Shown here: one piece after another, positions 51,492 to 61,862 of the stretch | Layout: the number at the start of each line of letters is the position of its first letter | Position numbering within the stretch: the first letter of the stretch is position 1 | Source of the DNA: Thecamonas trahens ATCC 50062 | Taxonomy: Eukaryota; Protista; Apusomonadida | Reading direction: 5' to 3' | Assembly (NCBI RefSeq): GCF_000142905.1 | Contig: NW_013657664.1 | Span: 338,133-402,132, forward strand | DNA: 64,000 nt | Notes under the pieces: generated by a model | What the model was told of the DNA's origin: nothing | Databases searched by the model: none | Seen by the model: the letters and a program-made list of their open reading frames with translations, nothing else | Program-made: the position numbers and the translations under genes

Positions 51492-53008
51492 ATGCAGAAT
51501 ATGGAGGTGACCCCCCTGGGTGGCCCTCCCGGTCGCGGCAGCGAGAACGCCGGCGGTGGCTCGGGTGCCCTTGCCGAGCTCACCACTGCCCAGCTCTACG
51601 GGTACATCATCGAGCAGCTGGTGGCCGACGGGTACTCCCAGGTCGCCATGGCCGTCTCGGTCGCCTCGGGTGTGCCTGCACAGGCCTCGCTCCGTCGCCC
51701 TGGTGGTGACGGCGAGTCCGGCCGCTCGGCAGAGGCCGCCCTCGGCCCCACCTCGGGTCAGCAAGCCTCTGGCCCAGAGGCAGACGGCGAGTCCTCCTCG
51801 CTCTTCGAGCTGGTGGCCCTCGGCCTCAAGGCCAAGCACACGGGTGTGCTGGACAAGCTGACTGCTGCAGGATCGGTCAACCTCGCCCTGGACGAGTCCA
51901 TGAGTACGTGTACCGCAGGAGAGGCCAGGAGGGCGGGCACGGGCAGAGTGGCCTTGTGCAACATCCGGAAGAGGAGGGTGCCGGTCGAGCCGGGAGTGAC
52001 TCACAATGGTGCGGGGGAGGGATAGAGCGGACCATGGCCGAGCCGGCGCCGGGCTACATCTCCAACTACGTGTCCAAGCACAACGACGCGGTGCTGGCCA
52101 CGGCGTTTTCGCGCGACGGTCTGTATCTGGCCACGGGCTCGGCGGACATGTCGCTCAAGCTGATGGATGTGGCGCGGATGAAGCGGGTGCACACTACGGG
52201 ACATCGCGAGTTTGGCCGCAACCCATCGAGTCATCCGGTGGTGCAGACGTTCTACGACCACGCGAGCGCGGTGCTCGACCTGGCCTTCCACCCGTTCCAG
52301 CCCATCCTGGTCTCGGGCTCGGGCGACTGCTCCATCAAGCTGTTCAAGACGACGACTGGTGTCAACCGGGCGTTCTCTGTCATGCAGGACGCGCACGCCG
52401 TCAACAGCCTCGCTTTTCACCCGTCGGGCGACTTTCTGCTCGCCGGCACGGCCGACGCCGCCCTTCGTGTCTACGACATGGAGACGCACAGCTGCTTCAT
52501 CTCGGCTGACACCGACAACTTCCACACCTCGGGCATCAACTCTGTTGCTTACGATAACTCGGCGAACCTGTACGTCACCGGCTCCTCCGATGGCTCGATC
52601 AAGGTCTGGGACGGCGCCAACGCCACGGTGGTTAACACCATTGCCGGCGGCCACTCGGGCGCGCCGGTCACGTCGGTCCAGCTCTCGTCCAACGGCCGCT
52701 ATCTCCTTAGCTCTGGCCTCGACTCGACGGTTCGCCTCTGGGAGGTCTCCACCGCCAAGTCGGTCCAGGTCTACAACCAACATGTCGCCACCATGCCGTC
52801 GCCGGCCACCTTTAACTTTCACGAGAAGCACATTCTTGTCTCTGACGAGGCCCGCGGCGGCATCGCCATCTACGATGTCCACACCGCGCAGATCGTGTCA
52901 ACGCTGCCTGGTCACAAGCAGCCGGTCTCGTCGATCACAGCCTCGCCCACCGAGGATGCGTTTGCCTCGGGCTCACTTGACAACTTTGCCCGCTACTGGA
53001 GCGCCTAG
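51492..53008 (+). CDS. CSTF1: cleavage stimulation factor 50 kDa subunit (WD40)
   Basis: N-terminal dimerisation segment LYGYIIEQLVADGY; intron 51904-52025 (GTACGT..TAG); HPVVQTFYDH and multiple WD40 repeats. Confidence 0.9.
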
Positions 53009-53042: not shown

Positions 53043-56000
53043 TTACTCATTGTACACCACCATGTCTGCGATGTGGAAGTGGTCCGACCACAGCGCCCGG
53101 AGCACATCCACGAGGTGCCGCATGTCGCGCTCGCCGCCGCCCTGCAGTCGCCACGACACATCGCCGCTCGACTCGTCGACGGCACCGGGCACAGCCTCCT
53201 CCACGAGGAACGAGAGGTCCAGTCGCGTCGGCGCAGAAGCGTACACGTCGGCCTCGAGCAAATCCTTGATCTCGATCGCCTGGTAGAGCGCAAACTGCTG
53301 TCCGGGCTTGGCCTTGTCGGCCTTGGCGAGAACCTTGTCGAACGCCGGAAGCGGGTGGACCGTGAACGCCTCGTTCAGCAGTACCAGCCAGGTGTTGGTC
53401 AGCACGAGCGTGGCGTGGAACGGTGCCTTGATCTTGCTGGACTTGTCAACGTCTCGTGGTGGGAGGACAACCACAGAGAGCACCTTGCGCAGGTCAAGCT
53501 GGACCTCGGACATGATGCCGGTAAAGATGGTGGTGGCAAGCGCGGCCCGGACATCCGGGGCGTTTTGAACCAGAGGCACATGCCGCGCCACCTTGTGCAG
53601 CGTCGCGCTCAGCTGCCGCGTCGCCTCGGCGCAGCCGGTGATGATCGCGTACGAGGTCTCCGGTGATAGCTCCAGACGGAGACTCTGTCCAAACGCGCCG
53701 ACTCGGACGGCGGCGAGGCTCGCAATGTCGATCTTGTCGAGCTCGACAAGACCGTCGATGAGGTCAGCGTCGCCCTGGGTGAGCGACTCGGTGAACGGTG
53801 ACGATTTGGACCACGACTTGTGGCCGAGAAGGAGGACCGAGGCTGTTGTGACAATCACGCCAGCCCAGCGCGTCACGTTGCCCGATGCGCTGAGGCTCCA
53901 CTTGGCGAGTCGGCCCGGTGCAAAGGCGAGAATGTTCTCAGTCTCGACGTCGATGATGTGCAGCTGGACGTGGAGCTTGAGCGCTGACTGGAGTGTCACG
54001 TCCCAGCCGAGATCAAGATAGCCGGCGTCGGCGCGGGCCTCGGCCTCGGACCGCATGCCCTCGTCATAGTCAACCGGTGTCACCGGTTTTGGTGGCGGTG
54101 CCTCGTCAGTGTGCACAACTGCGGCGTCGCTGGACGCTGAGCCGACACGCGGCGATGCTGCGTGGCCTGCTGCAGACGATGATGCCGCAAAAGAGTGGGC
54201 CGATGCCTCGGATGCCACCGACGAGGCCATGCCCGAGCTCGCTCCGGCGCCTGCAGTAGCACCCGGGATGGCCAGTGGCGCCGTCGCCTCAGCTACCGCT
54301 GGCTGTGCCTCCTCAAATGCCTCGACAATAAAGTCGGAGCCGCAGGTCGGGCACATGTCGCGAAGCATAGCCTTGGTCGTGTCGGCATACGTCGCCGAGC
54401 ACTTCAGACACTTGACGGTAGCGTGGAGAACAGCGAGCTCTGGGTTGGCCAACGAGTTGAGGAGGTCGACAAGCTCACCAACGACGTCGGCCTCAACCGC
54501 ATACTCGACTGTCGACGCCACGCCGCGGTCCCTGCGGAACTCGAGCTGGACTCGCGAGCCCGAACGTGCCGAGAAGGTTGAGGCTCGGTAGAGGTGCTCG
54601 AGGTTGTGGGTGGCGACGACTTCGGCGTCGGTCACGTCCATTTCCGAGATCTTGCCGCGGGTAACAATGAGAATGAGGGTCTTGGCCGCTGAGCCGGTGG
54701 TCTCCACCAGAAACTCGCCTTGAGTCGAGCCGTCGTCGGATGACGCATCCGCCTCCGACGACTCGGCACCGGCGTCTGGCGCGGTGGCAAGCCCATCGTC
54801 ACCAGCGATCGATTCTGCCGAGCGCATAGAGCTGGCAGTCGAGGGATGCGAAGTCGGCGGCGTCCCGTCGCGCGGCAGCAGTGTCGGCGAGCGGGGTGAG
54901 ATGGCTGGTGAGCGCGGTGAAGCCTCGGAGGAGCGACCGCCAGGCGGTGGCAGCGGCAGGGCGTCAAAGGCGGCATCGTTTGGTGCCGGCAAGTGTGACC
55001 CGCTCGTTCGCGACGTGCTTGACTTGGTCTCATCCGACGGAGCAGGAGTGGCCAGCTTCGCCTGTGCGTCTTGCATCAAGGCCGAGAGCGAGGTCGATCC
55101 CGAGCGGCGCGACCGGGTCCGGGAGCGCGAGCGCGAGCGTGACACCGACGGCGACGGCGACGAGTGGCCCGAGTTTGCCGAACATTCCTTGCGCTTACGC
55201 CTCTTGCGCTTCTTTCGCCGGCTCCTGCCGCTAGTAACGAAAAAGCCGTCCTTGGAACGCGCTTCCGACCGCGACTTGCGCTTGGCCACAACCAGCTGTG
55301 GCGAGCTGAGCCCGTCGGGCCGCGTCGGCGACGAGGACGCGACCGTGGCATAGGGATCGGCAACAAGCCGCGGCGAAGTGTGGGAAGCGGCCAACCGCTG
55401 CTCGCGGCGATCACGTTCGAGCTGGGTGAGAACCACCAGCCAGTTGTCTCCGTAGCGAGCCTTGATGTCCTCGACCTGGCGCTTGAACTCCTGCGTCGAC
55501 TCTTTGAGCTCGGTCGAGCTCGACAGTGGCACCGGGAGCGGAGCAGTAGCAGTTGGCGCGGCAAGAAGAGCGGGAGTAGCAACAGACGGCCCCGAATAGC
55601 CTTGCGGGGGCGAGGAGGCCACGCGCGGGCGCGGCGCCGGAACATCGCGAATAGCGGCAACGCGGGCGCGCGGAGACGACGATATCAGAGCTGGGGCTGG
55701 TGAGCCCGAGGCGGCGCGACGGTGAACCTCACGTGATGCTGAGACAACCCGTGAAACAGCTGCGGCGTCCGAGGACGACAGCGGGGCGCCGTCGAGCGTC
55801 CGCAGCGACTCGGAGCCTGCAAGCTCAAACTCGGCAAAGGTGGCGACACGAAAGTCAGTCCGCGCTGCCACAGGGTTGCCGGCCAACCACAGCGCTTCAA
55901 GGCATGGCAGAGCGGCCAGCCGCGAGACCTCGTCGAGGGAGACAACCAGGTTGAGGGCAAGGTCGAGCGACTCGAGCGCGTAGAGCTTGCCGAGGCCGGC

Positions 56001-56927
56001 CAGTGAGCGGATTGAGTTGGAGCGAAGCGAGAGCGACCGCAGATTGCCGACTTGAGTGTGGACGTTGGCAAATGAGGTGATGGCGTTGTAGCCAAGGTCA
56101 GCAGTGTGGAGGTAGATGCACTCCTCGAGGTGCTCGATGGCGGTCAGCTTGTTGTGGCTGAGAACGAGGACTTCCAAGTAGGGAACGGCCAGTAGCGCCC
56201 GCTGGTCAATCCGCTCGAGCCCAGCGTGGGTTATGGTAAGCTCGCGGAGGCGTGGCCAGACGACCTCGCGAACCTTGCGGATCGGCGAGCCGATCTGCGC
56301 CGATGGTGAAGGTGGATCCGAAAAGGCCTCGCCGTCACCGTTTCCAGCGCCATGCTCGGCCGCCGTGGGCGACGGCAGCGGCGAAGCAAAGACCTCAACG
56401 CCATGCAACGGCAAGTCGACAAGCAGCTGGTCAAGCGCAAAGCGTGAATGGACCGGGAAGGGCAGGGCAGGACCCTGATCTGGATCCGAGCGACCGCCCG
56501 AGCGCGGAGCAGCGACGACGAGGGTCAGCGCGCGAAGCTGGACAAAGACTTCGTTGAGGTCAGCAAGCTGGCGTGGGAGCACGTTGTCGGCATGCAGTCG
56601 CTCGAGCGAGTGGAACATGCCCATGGCAACTGGGTGGTCTGCGGCGATGTGTGCAGCATGCGGCGGAGGATGCCGCGGACCAGCGACATGAAGCGAGGGC
56701 AACTTGCGAACAAAACGGTCGATGACCATCATGGCATCAGCATCCCCATACTCCCTGCATGACTCTGCACCATGTTCGTGGAACATGTACAGCCGTCCGT
56801 TGAGATAGGCCAGGCACGCCGGGTTGACGGTAAAGGGCGCCGCTCCACCGACGACCTCCTCACCATGCTCGGCCACAAACCGCTTGAGCGAGGAGATGAA
56901 CACATGCCCGTTGACCTCACCAGACAT
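53043..56927 (-). CDS. STK11IP: LRR protein, STK11IP/nischarin-like
   Basis: LRR array (LSHNKL, LGYNAI, LRSNSI, LALNLV, LAGNPV), CLKC..CPTCGS zinc ribbon, C-terminal PH-like regions. Confidence 0.75.
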   Translation of the reverse strand: MSGEVNGHVFISSLKRFVAEHGEEVVGGAAPFTVNPACLAYLNGRLYMFHEHGAESCREYGDADAMMVIDRFVRKLPSLHVAGPRHPPPHAAHIAADHPVAMGMFHSLERLHADNVLPRQLADLNEVFVQLRALTLVVAAPRSGGRSDPDQGPALPFPVHSRFALDQLLVDLPLHGVEVFASPLPSPTAAEHGAGNGDGEAFSDPPSPSAQIGSPIRKVREVVWPRLRELTITHAGLERIDQRALLAVPYLEVLVLSHNKLTAIEHLEECIYLHTADLGYNAITSFANVHTQVGNLRSLSLRSNSIRSLAGLGKLYALESLDLALNLVVSLDEVSRLAALPCLEALWLAGNPVAARTDFRVATFAEFELAGSESLRTLDGAPLSSSDAAAVSRVVSASREVHRRAASGSPAPALISSSPRARVAAIRDVPAPRPRVASSPPQGYSGPSVATPALLAAPTATAPLPVPLSSSTELKESTQEFKRQVEDIKARYGDNWLVVLTQLERDRREQRLAASHTSPRLVADPYATVASSSPTRPDGLSSPQLVVAKRKSRSEARSKDGFFVTSGRSRRKKRKRRKRKECSANSGHSSPSPSVSRSRSRSRTRSRRSGSTSLSALMQDAQAKLATPAPSDETKSSTSRTSGSHLPAPNDAAFDALPLPPPGGRSSEASPRSPAISPRSPTLLPRDGTPPTSHPSTASSMRSAESIAGDDGLATAPDAGAESSEADASSDDGSTQGEFLVETTGSAAKTLILIVTRGKISEMDVTDAEVVATHNLEHLYRASTFSARSGSRVQLEFRRDRGVASTVEYAVEADVVGELVDLLNSLANPELAVLHATVKCLKCSATYADTTKAMLRDMCPTCGSDFIVEAFEEAQPAVAEATAPLAIPGATAGAGASSGMASSVASEASAHSFAASSSAAGHAASPRVGSASSDAAVVHTDEAPPPKPVTPVDYDEGMRSEAEARADAGYLDLGWDVTLQSALKLHVQLHIIDVETENILAFAPGRLAKWSLSASGNVTRWAGVIVTTASVLLLGHKSWSKSSPFTESLTQGDADLIDGLVELDKIDIASLAAVRVGAFGQSLRLELSPETSYAIITGCAEATRQLSATLHKVARHVPLVQNAPDVRAALATTIFTGIMSEVQLDLRKVLSVVVLPPRDVDKSSKIKAPFHATLVLTNTWLVLLNEAFTVHPLPAFDKVLAKADKAKPGQQFALYQAIEIKDLLEADVYASAPTRLDLSFLVEEAVPGAVDESSGDVSWRLQGGGERDMRHLVDVLRALWSDHFHIADMVVYNE

Positions 56928-57205
56928 GATACACAGCTGGCTGCGGTGGGGGGGGGGGGGGGGCTGGTTGGCTGGGAAGTGCCCCTGGGAAGGGCCGGGG
57001 TTGGTCCAAGTGGGGTGGTGCCGTCGTGCCCATGTCGTGGTGGCAAGAGTTGTGCGAGCGGAGCATGGCGACGGTCCGACCTGGTCTCTGCGCTCCGGGG
57101 AAGGGAGAGGGACGGGGCGGCAGGCTGGGCAGGCCACCTGACTGCCGAGCAGACAGGCTGGCGTTGGTAGCCGCAGACAGGCTGTGGCGAGAGACTCTGG
57201 TGCTG

Positions 57206-58552
57206 ATGGCCACACGGCGGGTCACGCGCTCGGCGAGGAAGCGAAGGCGCAAGGACGAGGACGAGGACGGGGACGCGACGGCATCCGCTCCGTCTGCGGC
57301 ATCCAGCTGCAAGCGCGCAAAGACGGGCCAGGGCGATCGGGTGCAGTCTCCGCCCATGCAGCGGGTGCTCACCGCCGACGATGTGGCGTGGTGGCGGCTG
57401 TGGCGATCGGGGCTGGTGGCCGGCATGCCGGGACTCGACAGCGATGCGGAGGCTGGGACGGTGGCCGAGGCGGTGGCGGGTGTACACGTGGCGGTGCAGG
57501 CGCAGATCCCGTTGGCGTGCAGCCTGGCGGTGTGGAACCGGATGGTGAGGCCGGCGGTAGATGCGGTGCCGGCGGCCAAGGTAGCGATGGCTGCGCTGCG
57601 GGAGACGATGCGAGGCGAGGGCGTGGTGCGGACGTGGGGTCCACGATGGACGCTGCATGCCATGACGGTCCGCGACCTGGCTCTGTATCTGGCAGCGCGT
57701 GGGAGTGGCCACATCGAGTACCTGTATCGCCGGGCTGGTTCGAAGAACGGGACGCCTCGAGCCGAGATTGACCATGCCATCGACGCGACAGCATCGAGAT
57801 TGGCGAGTCATGGGAGCATGAGCAAGGATGAGTATGCCGAGATGGGCCTGCCGATGGCTGTCCGATATTGGGTGTTTGGCGCTCTCACGTTTAGTGGCCA
57901 GGCAGTGAGGGACGATGTGGGCGACTCGAGCACGCCTGTGCTGCGGCCGATGCCAGCTGCCTTTGCGGCGTATTCCTTCGAGCCCGAGGCCGCATGGCGC
58001 GAGCTCCTCTTACGTTACTTTGACGTCTACGGGCCAGCAAGTGAGACCGATGTGCGCTACTGGCTCGGCGCCAAGCGCGGCGAGACAGCACCGCGGGTGT
58101 CGGCCCTGGTGGCATCGGGCGAGCTGACATCCGTAAGTGTCACGTCGCGCGAGGACGAGGAGGTGTTCATCCGCACCAGCGTGCTCGAGGAGCTCGATGC
58201 GCTCCCGCCGCGTGCTGGTGCCGGGGACACGATGGTCGTTCGGCTGCTCGGCCGGTTCGAGCCGGTCCTCATCGCGGTCAAGGACAAGAGTGCGTGGATC
58301 GCTCCTGAGCACTACCGCAAGGTCTGGGCGCACACCAATGTGGCGTCTGTGGTGCTTGTCAACACGCGGCTCGTAGGACGGTGGAAGGTGGTGCGTCGGG
58401 CCAAGATGCTGACAATAGTGATCACTGCGTTTGACGCCAAGTGCATGTGCTCGATCGAACAGGCGTGGGACGAGGTGCTGGTGCAGGCTGGGGGGCTGGC
58501 GAGCGTGTACGGGTTCGCAGACCGCGCGTCATGGGCTGTCCAACTCGAGTGA
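57206..58552 (+). CDS. alkZ: AlkZ-family (HTH_42, winged-helix) DNA glycosylase, copy 1
   Basis: VQAQ (QxQ), VRTWGPRWTLHAM, RYFDVYGPAS..D..YWLG, VRLLGRFEP.L, VLVNTRLVGRWK; N-terminal RKRRRK. Confidence 0.85.
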   Translation: MATRRVTRSARKRRRKDEDEDGDATASAPSAASSCKRAKTGQGDRVQSPPMQRVLTADDVAWWRLWRSGLVAGMPGLDSDAEAGTVAEAVAGVHVAVQAQIPLACSLAVWNRMVRPAVDAVPAAKVAMAALRETMRGEGVVRTWGPRWTLHAMTVRDLALYLAARGSGHIEYLYRRAGSKNGTPRAEIDHAIDATASRLASHGSMSKDEYAEMGLPMAVRYWVFGALTFSGQAVRDDVGDSSTPVLRPMPAAFAAYSFEPEAAWRELLLRYFDVYGPASETDVRYWLGAKRGETAPRVSALVASGELTSVSVTSREDEEVFIRTSVLEELDALPPRAGAGDTMVVRLLGRFEPVLIAVKDKSAWIAPEHYRKVWAHTNVASVVLVNTRLVGRWKVVRRAKMLTIVITAFDAKCMCSIEQAWDEVLVQAGGLASVYGFADRASWAVQLE

Positions 58553-58880
58553 GATGCGCTCTAGCGCAGCTTCTGCGGCGTCTCCCTCCGGCGTGTTGCC
58601 GGTGAGAGCTCGATGGTAAAGCAAGTGGTACAACTGCCATAGTCGATCCATTAATGCGATCCTAATCTCAGGCTGGTCAGGAGAGTCCGTCGGTATCCGC
58701 ACTCACGAGCCTACGCTATCAGGAGAGCCGAGCAAGTCGGGTCAGATGCCAGCCGCGTGCAGGCGAGCAGAGGAGGGGGCAAGGATACAACACTGCCACC
58801 GGGTGCGTCCACCTGACTGCCGAGCAGACAGGCTGGCGTTGGTAGCCGCAGACAGGCTGTGGCGAGAGACTCTGGTGCTG

Positions 58881-60239
58881 ATGGCCACACGGCGGGTCAC
58901 GCGCTCGGCGAGGAAGCGAAGGCGCAAGGACGAGGACGAGGACGGGGACGCGACGGCATCCGCTCCGTCTGCGGCATCCAGCTGCAAGCGCGCAAAGACG
59001 GGCCAGGGCGATCGGGTGCAGTCTCCGCCCATGCAGCGGGTGCTCACCGCCGACGATGTGGCGTGGTGGCGGCTGTGGCGATCGGGGCTGGTGGCCGGCA
59101 TGCCGGGACTCGACAGCGATGCGGAGGCTGGGACGGTGGCCGAGGCGGTGGCGGGTGTACACGTGGCGGTGCAGGCGCAGATCCCGTTGGCGTGCAGCCT
59201 GGCGGTGTGGAACCGGATGGTGAGGCCGGCGGTAGATGCGGTGCCGGCGGCCAAGGTAGCGATGGCTGCGCTGCGGGAGACGATGCGAGGCGAGGGCGTG
59301 GTGCGGACGTGGGGTCCACGATGGACGCTGCATGCCATGACGGTCCGCGACCTGGCTCTGTATCTGGCAGCGCGTGGGAGCGGCCACATCGAGTATCTCT
59401 TTCACCGCGCCGCTACTCGGAAGGACATCAAACGGATTGCGACGCAAGCCGAAATGGAGCGGATGGTAGAGGCGACTGCAGCCCGGCTGTCATCCCAAGG
59501 TAGCGTGAGCAAGGATGAGTTTGCTACCATGAGCTTGCCGTCGACAGCACAGCACGGTGTGTTCGGAGTCATCGCCTACCGCGGCCAGGCGGTGCGGGAC
59601 GATGTGGGCGACTCGAGCACGCCTGTGCTGCGGCCGATGCCAGCTGCCTTTGCGGCGTATTCCTTCGAGCCCGAGGCCGCATGGCGCGAGCTCCTCTTAC
59701 GTTACTTTGACGTCTACGGGCCAGCAAGTGAGACCGATGTGCGCTACTGGCTCGGCGCCAAGCGCGGCGAGACAGCACCGCGGGTGTCGGCCCTGGTGGC
59801 ATCGGGCGAGCTGACATCCGTAAGTGTCACGTCGCGCGAGGACGAGGAGGTGTTCATCCGCACCAGCGTGCTCGAGGAGCTCGATGCGCTCCCGCCGCGT
59901 GCTGGTGCCGGGGACACGATGGTCGTTCGGCTGCTCGGCCGGTTCGAGCCGGTCCTCATCGCGGTCAAGGACAAGAGTGCGTGGATCGCTCCTGAGCACT
60001 ACCGCAAGGTCTGGGCGCACACCAATGTGGCGTCTGTGGTGCTTGTCAACACGCGGCTCGTAGGACGGTGGAAGGTGGTGCGTCGGGCCAAGATGCTGAC
60101 AATAGTGATCACTGCGTTTGACGCCAAGTGCATGTGCTCGATCGAACAGGCGTGGGACGAGGTGCTGGTGCAGGCTGGGGGGCTGGCGAGCGTGTACGGG
60201 TTCGCAGACCGCGCGTCATGGGCTGTCCAACTCGAGTGA
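58881..60239 (+). CDS. alkZ: AlkZ-family (HTH_42, winged-helix) DNA glycosylase, copy 2
   Basis: Same motifs as copy 1; identical except the central segment at about 59396-59595. Confidence 0.85.
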   Translation: MATRRVTRSARKRRRKDEDEDGDATASAPSAASSCKRAKTGQGDRVQSPPMQRVLTADDVAWWRLWRSGLVAGMPGLDSDAEAGTVAEAVAGVHVAVQAQIPLACSLAVWNRMVRPAVDAVPAAKVAMAALRETMRGEGVVRTWGPRWTLHAMTVRDLALYLAARGSGHIEYLFHRAATRKDIKRIATQAEMERMVEATAARLSSQGSVSKDEFATMSLPSTAQHGVFGVIAYRGQAVRDDVGDSSTPVLRPMPAAFAAYSFEPEAAWRELLLRYFDVYGPASETDVRYWLGAKRGETAPRVSALVASGELTSVSVTSREDEEVFIRTSVLEELDALPPRAGAGDTMVVRLLGRFEPVLIAVKDKSAWIAPEHYRKVWAHTNVASVVLVNTRLVGRWKVVRRAKMLTIVITAFDAKCMCSIEQAWDEVLVQAGGLASVYGFADRASWAVQLE

Positions 60240-60247
60240 GATGCGTT

Positions 60248-61862
60248 TTACATGCCTGGCAGCTTGCCGCCCTTCATCATGTTGCCGAACGACTTCATCA
60301 TGGACTGCAGGCCGGAGCGGCCACCCATCTGCTGGATCATGCGCGGGTCGAGGACCTTGGAAAGGTCAGGCCCGTTGCGCGAGTTCATGTTGAGGCCCTT
60401 CATCTTCTTGAAGACCTTTGCGAAGCGCTTGAACTCGTCGAGCAGCGACGAAACAATGTTGACCGAGGTGCCGGAGCCGCGGGCGACACGGGCAATGCGC
60501 GACGGGTTAAACTTGACGTCGCAATCGAGCTCCTCATTGGTCATCGAGTCCATGATGGAGAGGAACATGTTGATGCGGCGGGCCGACTCTTCGTCCGAGC
60601 CCGAGTTGAGCATGGACGACGACATGCCAGGCATCATGGACATGACCGACGAGATGGGGCCCATCTGCAACAGGTTCTGGAACTGGTCAGCCATGTCGCG
60701 GAGGGTGAACACGCCCTGTTTGAGCTTTTCCAGCAGCTCGGGCTGCTGGTCAATGCCGGCGTCCTGGAGCTTGGAGACGAGACCCATGATGTCGCCGCGG
60801 CCGAGGAGGCGCGAGACAAACGACGAGGCGTCGAACGGCTCGAGCTGGTCGATGTGCTCGCCCATGCCGATGAAGACAATGGGCGAGTGAGTGGCCGCGA
60901 CGGCCGAGAGCGCGCCACCACCCTTTGCGGAACCGTCCATCTTGGTGATGATGACCGAGCCGACGTCGACTCGCTCGCGGAAGGCCTCGGCCTGGTCCTG
61001 CGCAGCCTGACCGATGGCGGCATCCATGACAAAGATGGTGGTGTCGGGCTCGACAGCCTCGGCAACCTCGGCCATCTCCTCAAACAGCGCCTCTTCCTGC
61101 TTGTGGCGGCCCGAGGTGTCGACAATGATGATCTCAAAGCCCTCCTCGCGGAACTTGTCCACGCCGTCGGCGGCGACCACCACGGGCGAGGTCTCGGTGT
61201 ACGAGCCGTAGTACGGGATGCGGGCCTTGGTGGCGTTCTGCTTCAGCTGATCAAAGGCACCAGCACGGAAGGTATCCGCACACACAAGACCGACCTTCCA
61301 CCCCTTCCGCTGGTAGTAGTACCCGAGCTTTCCCGCCGTCGTCGTCTTGCCATTCCCCTGCAGTCCCACAAGCATGATGACGTTCGTCTGGCCCTTGACC
61401 GGCACGTACGGCTTGTGCCCGGGGTCCACCAGGTTGATGAGCTCCTGGAAGACAGCCTGTGGATTGGAAGCGGGAGGGAGGGGTGCGGTGAGGCGGGGGG
61501 GGAGGGGGGGAGAGCATGGAAGGCGACACGGGAGGTGGGCGAGGGGGGGGGGGGGGGGGAGGGGGGGAAGAAGGAGGGCATGGGGGGGAGGAAGAGGAAG
61601 AGAGAGGGGCAGGGAAGGGGACAGGGCGTACAGTCTGGATGAGCTTGCGCTTGTTGATGCCCTGGGCCATCTCCTCCATGTTCACCTGCTGGGTAATGGC
61701 CTTGCGTAGGTTGAGGACAAGCGGGACCGAGACGTCGGCGGCAATGAGGGCGTTGCCGATCTCCTTCAGCATATCGTTGAGCACTTTGTCGTCCACAAGC
61801 ATGGCGTTGGACATATTGCGCAGCGCATCGGAAATACGCGACCCAAGCGCTCCAAGCACCAT
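60248..61862 (-). CDS. SRP54: signal recognition particle 54 kDa protein
   Basis: Exon 1 61862-61632 (MVLGALG..), intron 61631-61457, exon 2 with [27 protein letters not shown], Met-rich M domain. Confidence 0.97.

Follow-up and report, generated by a model that had tools for sequence, protein, structure and literature searches.

The window analysed here is a 64,000-nucleotide stretch of the genome of the apusomonad Thecamonas trahens ATCC 50062 (contig NW_013657664.1, positions 338,133–402,132), and our subject is a pair of adjacent genes within it that appear to encode DNA glycosylases related to bacterial AlkZ. The interpretation we favor, with moderate confidence, is that these are two intact nuclear genes for AlkZ-like (AZL) glycosylases, predicted to be catalytically active and to be imported into the nucleus, that their ancestry is bacterial but old, and that they form a tandem pair whose members have diverged in a block over the second winged helix (WH2).

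The two genes are arranged head-to-tail on the plus strand. Copy 1 (57206–58552) and copy 2 (58881–60239) are each a single open reading frame (ORF) with no intron, encoding 448 and 452 amino acids, respectively, and the proteins are 92% identical. Both match PF06224 (AlkZ-like, formerly HTH_42) over profile positions 5–309 of 329, with 110.4 bits (E = 1.9e-31) for copy 1 and 111.5 bits (E = 8.8e-32) for copy 2, about 85 bits above the curated cut-off of 25.9 bits. Membership in the HTH_42 superfamily, proposed in an original prediction that was made from the letters of the window and their translations, is borne out by these scores. A six-frame scan of the whole assembly (28.7 Mb, 131 contigs) returned copies 1 and 2 as the only PF06224 matches in T. 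trahens; no model matched in an NCBIfam scan of the two proteins.

The HTH_42 superfamily includes enzymes with two kinds of catalytic motif, of which the AZL kind has the form (Q/H)-hydrophobic-Q. AlkZ needs both glutamines of its Q-Phi-Q motif to be active, and in the YcaQ clade the motif is Q-Phi-D (Bradley et al. 2020, PMC7367128). The putative catalytic Q-x-Q of copy 1 is Q98-A99-Q100 (codons at 57497–57505, plus strand) and the same QAQ is kept in copy 2 (59172–59180, plus strand). Across an alignment of both copies with 22 relatives (A3), Q100 is invariant and Q98 nearly so, and in a larger alignment of 85 rows (A6) both are nearly invariant. When the A3 profile is compared with Streptomyces sahachiroi AlkZ (5UUJ), the clade consensus G-v-Q-A-Q falls on G-V-Q-A-Q of that enzyme, so that the motif noted in the original prediction is not only intact but placed where the catalytic glutamines of AlkZ lie. 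The match to AlkZ is full length (E = 2.7e-46). The match of the same profile to Thermobifida AlkX, a YcaQ-like (YQL) enzyme (9ZD6), is weak and partial (E = 3.2e-9, only ~120 residues), and neither copy has the Q-x-D motif of the YQL enzymes. A search of the PDB sequences with a single window protein did not find AlkZ, whereas the clade profile did. Other conserved family positions are also kept, among them R112, R147, T149, H151, D282 and W393, as is the R-x-T-L-H motif.

A model of copy 1 built with AlphaFold2 on alignment A6 has a mean pLDDT of 88 and a pTM of 0.85. The predicted fold is a C-shaped arrangement of three winged helices and a C-terminal beta-barrel. A Foldseek search of the PDB with this model places AlkZ 5UUJ first (E = 1.7e-20, TM 0.78 on the target), followed by AlkX 9ZD6 (E = 8e-11) and then by the C-terminal domain of Lhr. 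The region of the DNA-binding hairpin or loop of the beta-barrel (beta11/12 in AlkZ, DBL in AlkX) can be aligned without deletion, with W374, G387, G391 and W393 conserved; this last comparison is from the alignment. Given the profile match to AlkZ, the aligned Q-A-Q, the retained family residues and the modeled fold, we assign both copies to the AZL-type (Q-x-Q) members of the superfamily.

According to DNA alignment A1, the duplicated units span 57134–58558 and 58809–60245 on the plus strand, each consisting of 72 bp of 5′ flank, the gene and 6 bp past its stop codon, and they are separated by a unique 250-bp spacer (58559–58808) with no similarity in A1 to the region upstream of unit 1. Over the 1220 nt outside a central block the copies do not differ at all. 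Within the block, which covers codons 167–235 of copy 1 (57704–57910, plus strand) and codons 167–239 of copy 2 (59379–59597, plus strand), 51 of 69 codons differ, 18 of them by synonymous changes only and 33 by changes of residue, and copy 2 is four codons longer. The two blocks are ~52% identical to each other. By the Nei–Gojobori method pS is 0.72 (dS ~2.4, saturated) and dN is 0.34, giving an omega of ~0.14. Saturated dS and low omega inside the block, with identical sequence around it, mean that the two forms of the block are old and constrained and that their flanks were homogenized recently, as would be expected if gene conversion halts at the center of the gene or is selected against there.

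The age of the duplication can be judged from the closest relative of the two proteins, a sequence from TARA Oceans metagenome contigs of ~61% GC (P0008; 36–39% identity). It is equally far from both blocks, with 19 of 69 positions identical for copy 1 and 19 of 73 for copy 2, which points to a duplication within the Thecamonas lineage. For the same reason the ancestral cassette cannot be told from the derived one; only the length state of copy 2 matches P0008, where the four extra codons are present as well. We thus picture a tandem duplication that would have taken place long ago in the Thecamonas lineage, after which gene conversion would have held both ends of the copies identical while the 69-codon block stayed diverged under purifying selection.

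Could the pair instead be an assembly artefact, with two alleles set side by side? The perfectly identical flanks speak for such an error. Each copy, however, is bordered on one side by sequence unique to it, the 250-bp spacer between the units is unique, and a dS of ~2.4 in the block is far too high for alleles. An independent metagenome contig (L003; ENA ERZ27245236, megahit contig k141_750386, positions 1–1831) is 99% identical to the spacer and copy 2, and joins a gene 3′ end, the spacer (with one base change) and a copy-2-type gene. We had considered this contig as independent proof of the two-copy layout and dropped that use of it: its first and last 141 nt are identical and constitute a k = 141 cycle, so that it cannot show the full arrangement and supports nothing beyond the junction that links a gene end, the spacer and a copy-2-type gene. 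Taken together, these points make an artefact very improbable. The cycle itself may mean that a close relative of Thecamonas has copy-2-type units in an array, or may be a graph artefact of the common gene ends.

Where the block lies in the protein is of some importance to its interpretation. It is the least conserved part of the protein across the family, and in the model it comprises the end of a helix at residues 155–181 and the helices at 185–202, 207–212 and 217–229. Profile alignments map helix 217–229 to the AlkZ segment 'SGWGSVLKPLAWRG' and to the stretch of AlkX that follows its WGWNW loop, that is, to alpha-I of WH2. The start of the block appears, by offset and approximately, to be near the alpha-F region. 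A recent preprint on AlkX states that lesion recognition in AZL enzymes was predicted to fall to alpha-I, and that alpha-F diverges among these enzymes (bioRxiv 10.64898/2025.12.11.693820). It is a reasonable hypothesis from these alignments that the two copies differ in lesion specificity, and different lesion preferences would be the most likely outcome of the divergence of the block.

The relatives of the two proteins do not agree with the original prediction's premise that the family is essentially prokaryotic. A word-based protein search with a single query found distant bacterial proteins only, at ~27–30% identity (7 matches); with an alignment query it gave 13 matches. An exhaustive HMMER search of 1.84 billion representatives gave 739 matches at E <= 0.001 with a distinct top group, and the named members of this group are eukaryotes: the chytrids Thoreauomyces humboldtii, Spizellomyces sp., Geranomyces variabilis, Phlyctochytrium arcticum and Rhizophlyctis rosea, the plasmodiophorids Plasmodiophora brassicae and Spongospora subterranea, the amoebozoan Rhizamoeba saxonica (from a transcriptome) and the red alga Bangiopsis (from an MMETSP transcriptome, where it could be a contaminant). 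The genes of Phlyctochytrium and Plasmodiophora lack introns and are located on contigs of 3.0 and 1.4 Mb, respectively, surrounded by ordinary eukaryotic genes such as those for a protein kinase, eIF4E and a C2H2 zinc-finger protein. The best bacterial relatives of the Thecamonas proteins are ~30–37% identical to them.

Phylogenetic placement was examined in two quick IQ-TREE runs (LG+C20 PMSF, with SH-aLRT as the only support measure and fragments of less than 320 amino acids left out). The Thecamonas proteins fall in a clade of 39–40 mostly eukaryotic rows with an SH-aLRT of 100, within which they pair with P0008 (support 99). A second group of 31 rows holds all of the chytrids, Rhizamoeba, the plasmodiophorids and many metagenome rows, and Bangiopsis groups with a further sequence (P0009) and an Acidobacteriota metagenome-assembled genome. 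TARA contigs are among the sources of the clade's rows. The clade also contains a trio without N-terminal extensions, for which the two contigs examined look bacterial: one member (P0013) adjoins genes for a histidine kinase and a sigma-54 activator, and another (P0010) adjoins a gene of the polyketide synthase type. The latter, on a Logan contig (SRR31444227), has an NMO/FabD-type gene on one side and a gene encoding >2500 amino acids on the other, a context similar to that of a polyketide cluster and in keeping with the self-resistance role known for AlkZ-like genes of bacteria. Outside the clade the nearest groups are bacterial (Chloroflexus, Planctomycetota and Myxococcota), and Escherichia coli YcaQ is a very long outgroup branch. 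The comparison with bacterial clades called for by the original prediction therefore has two sides: the genes are nested among bacterial AlkZ-like lineages, far from YcaQ, but their closest relatives are not bacterial.

Both genes lie on a 538-kb contig among intron-bearing neighbors. Upstream of copy 1, and pointing away from it with ~280 bp separating the likely starts, is a gene for a protein of 1294 amino acids in one ORF (53043–56927, minus strand); Pfam detects LRR_4, LRR_8 and LRR_9 in it, and since only LRR domains were returned, the STK11IP-like label given to it in the original prediction is unconfirmed. A run of 16 G occupies 56948–56963 in the intergenic region. It is located outside the duplicated unit, and copy 2 consequently has a different upstream region. 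Beyond the LRR gene, ~4 kb from copy 1, is a WD40 gene (51908–53008, plus strand) with matches to THOC3/Prp19-like propellers, which serves below as the anchor of a conserved neighborhood, and the gene for ribosomal protein P2 (RPLP2) is farther out.

On the other side, copy 2 converges with an SRP54 gene of at least two exons (60248–61862, minus strand). When its exons were searched one by one, rather than as a joined spliced model, SRP54_N was found on one exon and SRP54 (the GTPase) and SRP_SPB (the M domain) on the other; the second exon is 100% identical to 'signal recognition particle protein 1' of T. trahens ATCC 50062. As read directly from the coordinates, the SRP54 stop codon (60248–60250, minus strand) and the copy 2 stop codon (60237–60239) are 8 bp apart, the distance given in the original prediction, and with so little space the 3′ untranslated regions of the two genes must overlap. 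The duplication boundary sits inside this 8-bp gap.

The composition of both copies (GC 0.66, GC3 0.78–0.79) is like that of the neighboring genes. We found no GC3 anomaly of the kind expected from foreign codon usage; the comparison of relative synonymous codon usage is weak owing to a small reference set. A contaminant or chimeric contig, which would have undermined the original prediction, was considered and ruled out by the eukaryotic neighbors, the intron-bearing SRP54 gene, the host-like composition and the 538-kb length of the contig, and chromosomal integration among eukaryotic genes stands as first described. The lack of introns was also correctly noted, as both genes are single ORFs, but it has little diagnostic value because the adjoining 1294-residue LRR gene is a single ORF as well.

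How did the gene come to be here? The original prediction, horizontal transfer from a bacterium into Thecamonas followed by the gain of a nuclear signal, has in its favor that the genes are intronless, that the sister groups of the clade are bacterial and a few rows inside it are in a bacterial context, and that the family is called bacterial in the literature we searched. As a recent and lineage-specific event, however, this is disfavored and in our estimate quite improbable. The best bacterial relatives are too dissimilar for it, K/R-rich extensions are common to chytrid and other eukaryotic homologues, the composition is host-like and the central blocks of the paralogues are saturated at silent sites. 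Further evidence comes from P0008, whose sole neighbor on its contig is a convergent WD40 gene 44 bp away (L086:1626–2723). The protein encoded by that gene is an orthologue of the WD40 protein of the window, at 60% identity. The same WD40 neighbor beside a gene that has diverged to 36–39% identity indicates that the gene was already there in the common ancestor of Thecamonas and the marine organism; judging from the WD40 similarity, the TARA contig (L086) is from a relative, probably another apusomonad. Horizontal transfer is thus upheld in one respect only: bacterial ancestry is plausible from the nesting of the clade among bacterial AlkZ-like lineages (Chloroflexus, Planctomycetota/Myxococcota and Acidobacteriota), but a transfer specific to the Thecamonas lineage does not fit eukaryotic nearest relatives and a WD40 neighbor shared with P0008.

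At the other extreme, the gene may be an old eukaryotic one, present in the ancestor of Amorphea or earlier and inherited vertically with many losses, in which case the bacterial members of the clade received it from eukaryotes. Apusomonads, fungi, Amoebozoa, Rhizaria and a red-alga transcriptome carry the gene, and the type of N-terminal extension is common to members. An approximately unbiased (AU) test did not reject a tree that unites the 35 putatively eukaryotic rows in a single clade (delta lnL 8.3, p-AU 0.298). This result allows a single origin without demonstrating one. The distribution is very patchy, all eukaryotic genes examined are intronless, the clade is nested in a large bacterial radiation, and branching within it is unresolved and does not follow the eukaryote tree. 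We regard vertical descent as unlikely, though a more serious competitor than a recent transfer. A broad vertical distribution was named in the original prediction as a finding that would speak against it, and what we observe is such a distribution in patchy form. Our preferred reading is that the gene would have passed from bacteria to eukaryotes long ago, by one transfer or several, and would have been patchily retained since. Read in this way, the Thecamonas genes are members of a patchy eukaryotic subfamily of plausible bacterial ancestry and, as suggested by the shared neighbor, have long been at this locus.

The remaining element of the original prediction, an N-terminal extension of about 50 residues with RKRRRK and KRAK, is present upstream of M51 in both copies (57206–57355 in copy 1 and, with the same sequence, 58881–59030 in copy 2, both on the plus strand). 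RKRRRK constitutes residues 11–16, is directly followed by the acidic run DEDEDGD, and KRAK constitutes residues 36–39. Residues 1–50 are predicted to be disordered (pLDDT < 50 in the model of copy 1), and this segment contains the classical nuclear localization signal (NLS) pattern K-(K/R)-x-(K/R). M51 (57356) aligns with the start of the bacterial homologues, and the first glutamine of the motif is residue 98 in the window proteins compared with ~40–49 in bacterial members.

Four observations support the view that the extension is translated, shared and NLS-like. (i) Of the rows in the eukaryote-rich clade, 17 of 30 have their Q-x-Q motif past residue 60, versus 5 of 93 outside it, and at least four basic residues within a 5-residue window precede the core in 11 of 30 rows versus 2 of 93. 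(ii) P0008 has the same layout, in which an acidic/glycine segment stands between two basic ones (RKRGKK ... KRKRQK), and has no Met at the position of M51. (iii) Chytrid homologues start with MKR(R/Q/T). (iv) The 99%-identical metagenome contig (L003) carries a 3-nt insertion within the extension that keeps the frame. Existing gene models may therefore be missing a basic head of 50 residues that the homologues suggest is real.

Several points weigh against the overall picture. For the extension, the stored protein record (P0002, 398 amino acids) and an ESM Atlas record both start at M51, and neither ATG has a purine at −3. In-frame ATGs and the open frame also continue upstream of M1 in both copies and on the TARA contig, as would be expected by chance in GC-rich DNA. 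For the block, the mapping to alpha-F and alpha-I comes from profile alignments and not from superposition, WH2 is dispensable for unhooking in the YcaQ-like subfamily, and a model of AlkZ could not place alpha-I near the crosslink (both bioRxiv 10.64898/2025.12.11.693820). For the origin, the trees are quick ones with many unresolved forks, including forks within the clade, several rows have skewed composition, and we inferred the eukaryotic or bacterial nature of many of the metagenome rows.

The extension could accordingly be untranslated, or could direct the protein to another compartment such as the mitochondrion. The records beginning at M51 and the absence of a purine at −3 are compatible with this, as is the open upstream frame of the TARA relative, which encodes a hydrophobic, arginine-bearing stretch. 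An acidic run immediately after the basic cluster is, however, unlike a mitochondrial presequence, and the missing Met in P0008, the recurrence of basic N-termini among chytrid homologues and the in-frame insertion in the metagenome contig also count against these readings. We therefore think both alternatives improbable, although they deserve some weight, and return to the reading in which the extension is an NLS.

In the mechanism we propose, translation would begin at the first ATG and the disordered, K/R-rich head of 50 residues would act as the nuclear localization signal. Once in the nucleus, the enzymes would hydrolyze the N-glycosidic bond of bulky or crosslinked N7-alkylguanine adducts, with Q98 and Q100 positioning the attacking water, and the resulting abasic site would be handed to base excision repair. 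A role in crosslink repair specifically, as originally predicted, is not established by these data because AlkZ-like enzymes act on bulky monoadducts too. It is possible, if rather less probable than the broader activity just described, that the substrates are bulky monoadducts or small N7-alkylguanines rather than interstrand crosslinks, or that the enzymes bind DNA without catalysis. Related HTH_42 glycosylases are stated to recognize N7-alkylated monoadducts, and high specificity for the adducts of one natural product is described for AZL enzymes (bioRxiv 10.64898/2025.12.11.693820); the lesion cannot be read from sequence. Both copies keep the catalytic motif and the invariant residues of the family, and purifying selection acts on the central block. 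These features argue against a non-catalytic role, but they do not tell crosslinks from monoadducts.

What would such enzymes be for? We suggest, tentatively, that the nuclear-targeted AlkZ-like branch serves bacterivorous, saprotrophic and parasitic eukaryotes (apusomonads, chytrids, amoebae and plasmodiophorids) as a defense against the DNA-alkylating or crosslinking products of the bacteria that they eat or live among, and that the Thecamonas pair, evolving in concert, keeps two old, alternative lesion-recognition cassettes in the WH2 region and hence two toxin specificities at one locus. If so, protists would have adopted a bacterial function of antibiotic self-resistance, and eukaryotes of several supergroups would have a second glycosylase route, unrelated to NEIL3, for the repair of bulky alkylation damage. 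The Thecamonas pair would then be a natural experiment on specificity, with two enzymes identical save for one 69-residue block over the helix proposed to read the lesion.

The published descriptions of the family are of bacterial proteins. HTH_42 has been called a 'superfamily of bacterial proteins' (Bradley et al. 2020, PMC7367128) and is described as bacterial also in Wang et al. 2016; about two-thirds of the known prokaryotic members are in Actinobacteria, with 12 sequences in Archaea (Bradley et al. 2022), and the word stem 'eukaryot' does not occur in the text of the latter paper. The AlkX preprint contrasts the bacterial glycosylases for interstrand crosslinks with eukaryotic NEIL3 (bioRxiv 10.64898/2025.12.11.693820). 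Our search of the literature for eukaryotic members of HTH_42, PF06224 or AlkZ returned nothing beyond a Pfam count in macroalgal genomes. The sequences themselves are not new, as eukaryotic relatives are already in public databases, auto-annotated as 'winged helix DNA-binding domain-containing protein'. The apparently new findings are the recognition of a eukaryotic, probably nuclear AlkZ-like branch and of a Thecamonas pair with conserved flanks and a diverged core.

Among characterized enzymes, the closest parallel is with S. sahachiroi AlkZ, the founding AZL. The Thecamonas proteins share with it a full-length PF06224 match and the aligned Q-A-Q, and it is the best structural match to the predicted fold; the sequences are ~22% identical, and AZL enzymes typically show little identity outside the motif. 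Unlike AlkZ, the Thecamonas genes are nuclear, encode a basic head of 50 residues predicted to be disordered and exist as two tandem paralogues with differences confined to the WH2 region. They are also outside any biosynthetic cluster. A genotoxin biosynthetic cluster, typical though not obligatory for an AZL gene, was not found at the locus, where the neighbors are the LRR, WD40, SRP54 and RPLP2 genes. E. coli YcaQ, Acinetobacter and Thermobifida AlkX and the other YQL enzymes are of the same superfamily and overall fold (Foldseek E = 8e-11 for 9ZD6), but the YQL group is highly conserved and has Q-x-D, whereas the Thecamonas motif is Q-A-Q and the clade profile matches AlkX weakly and in part.

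NEIL3 may be a functional analogue, in that it is a glycosylase that unhooks crosslinks in nuclear DNA. It is unrelated in sequence, has the Fpg/Nei fold and acts on abasic-site and psoralen crosslinks at fork-like structures, as described in the AlkZ and YcaQ papers. The P. brassicae and S. subterranea proteins and those of the spizellomycete and rhizophlyctid chytrids, by comparison, are only 25–33% identical to the Thecamonas proteins, yet they belong to the same clade, are encoded by intronless nuclear genes and in many cases have K/R-rich N-termini.

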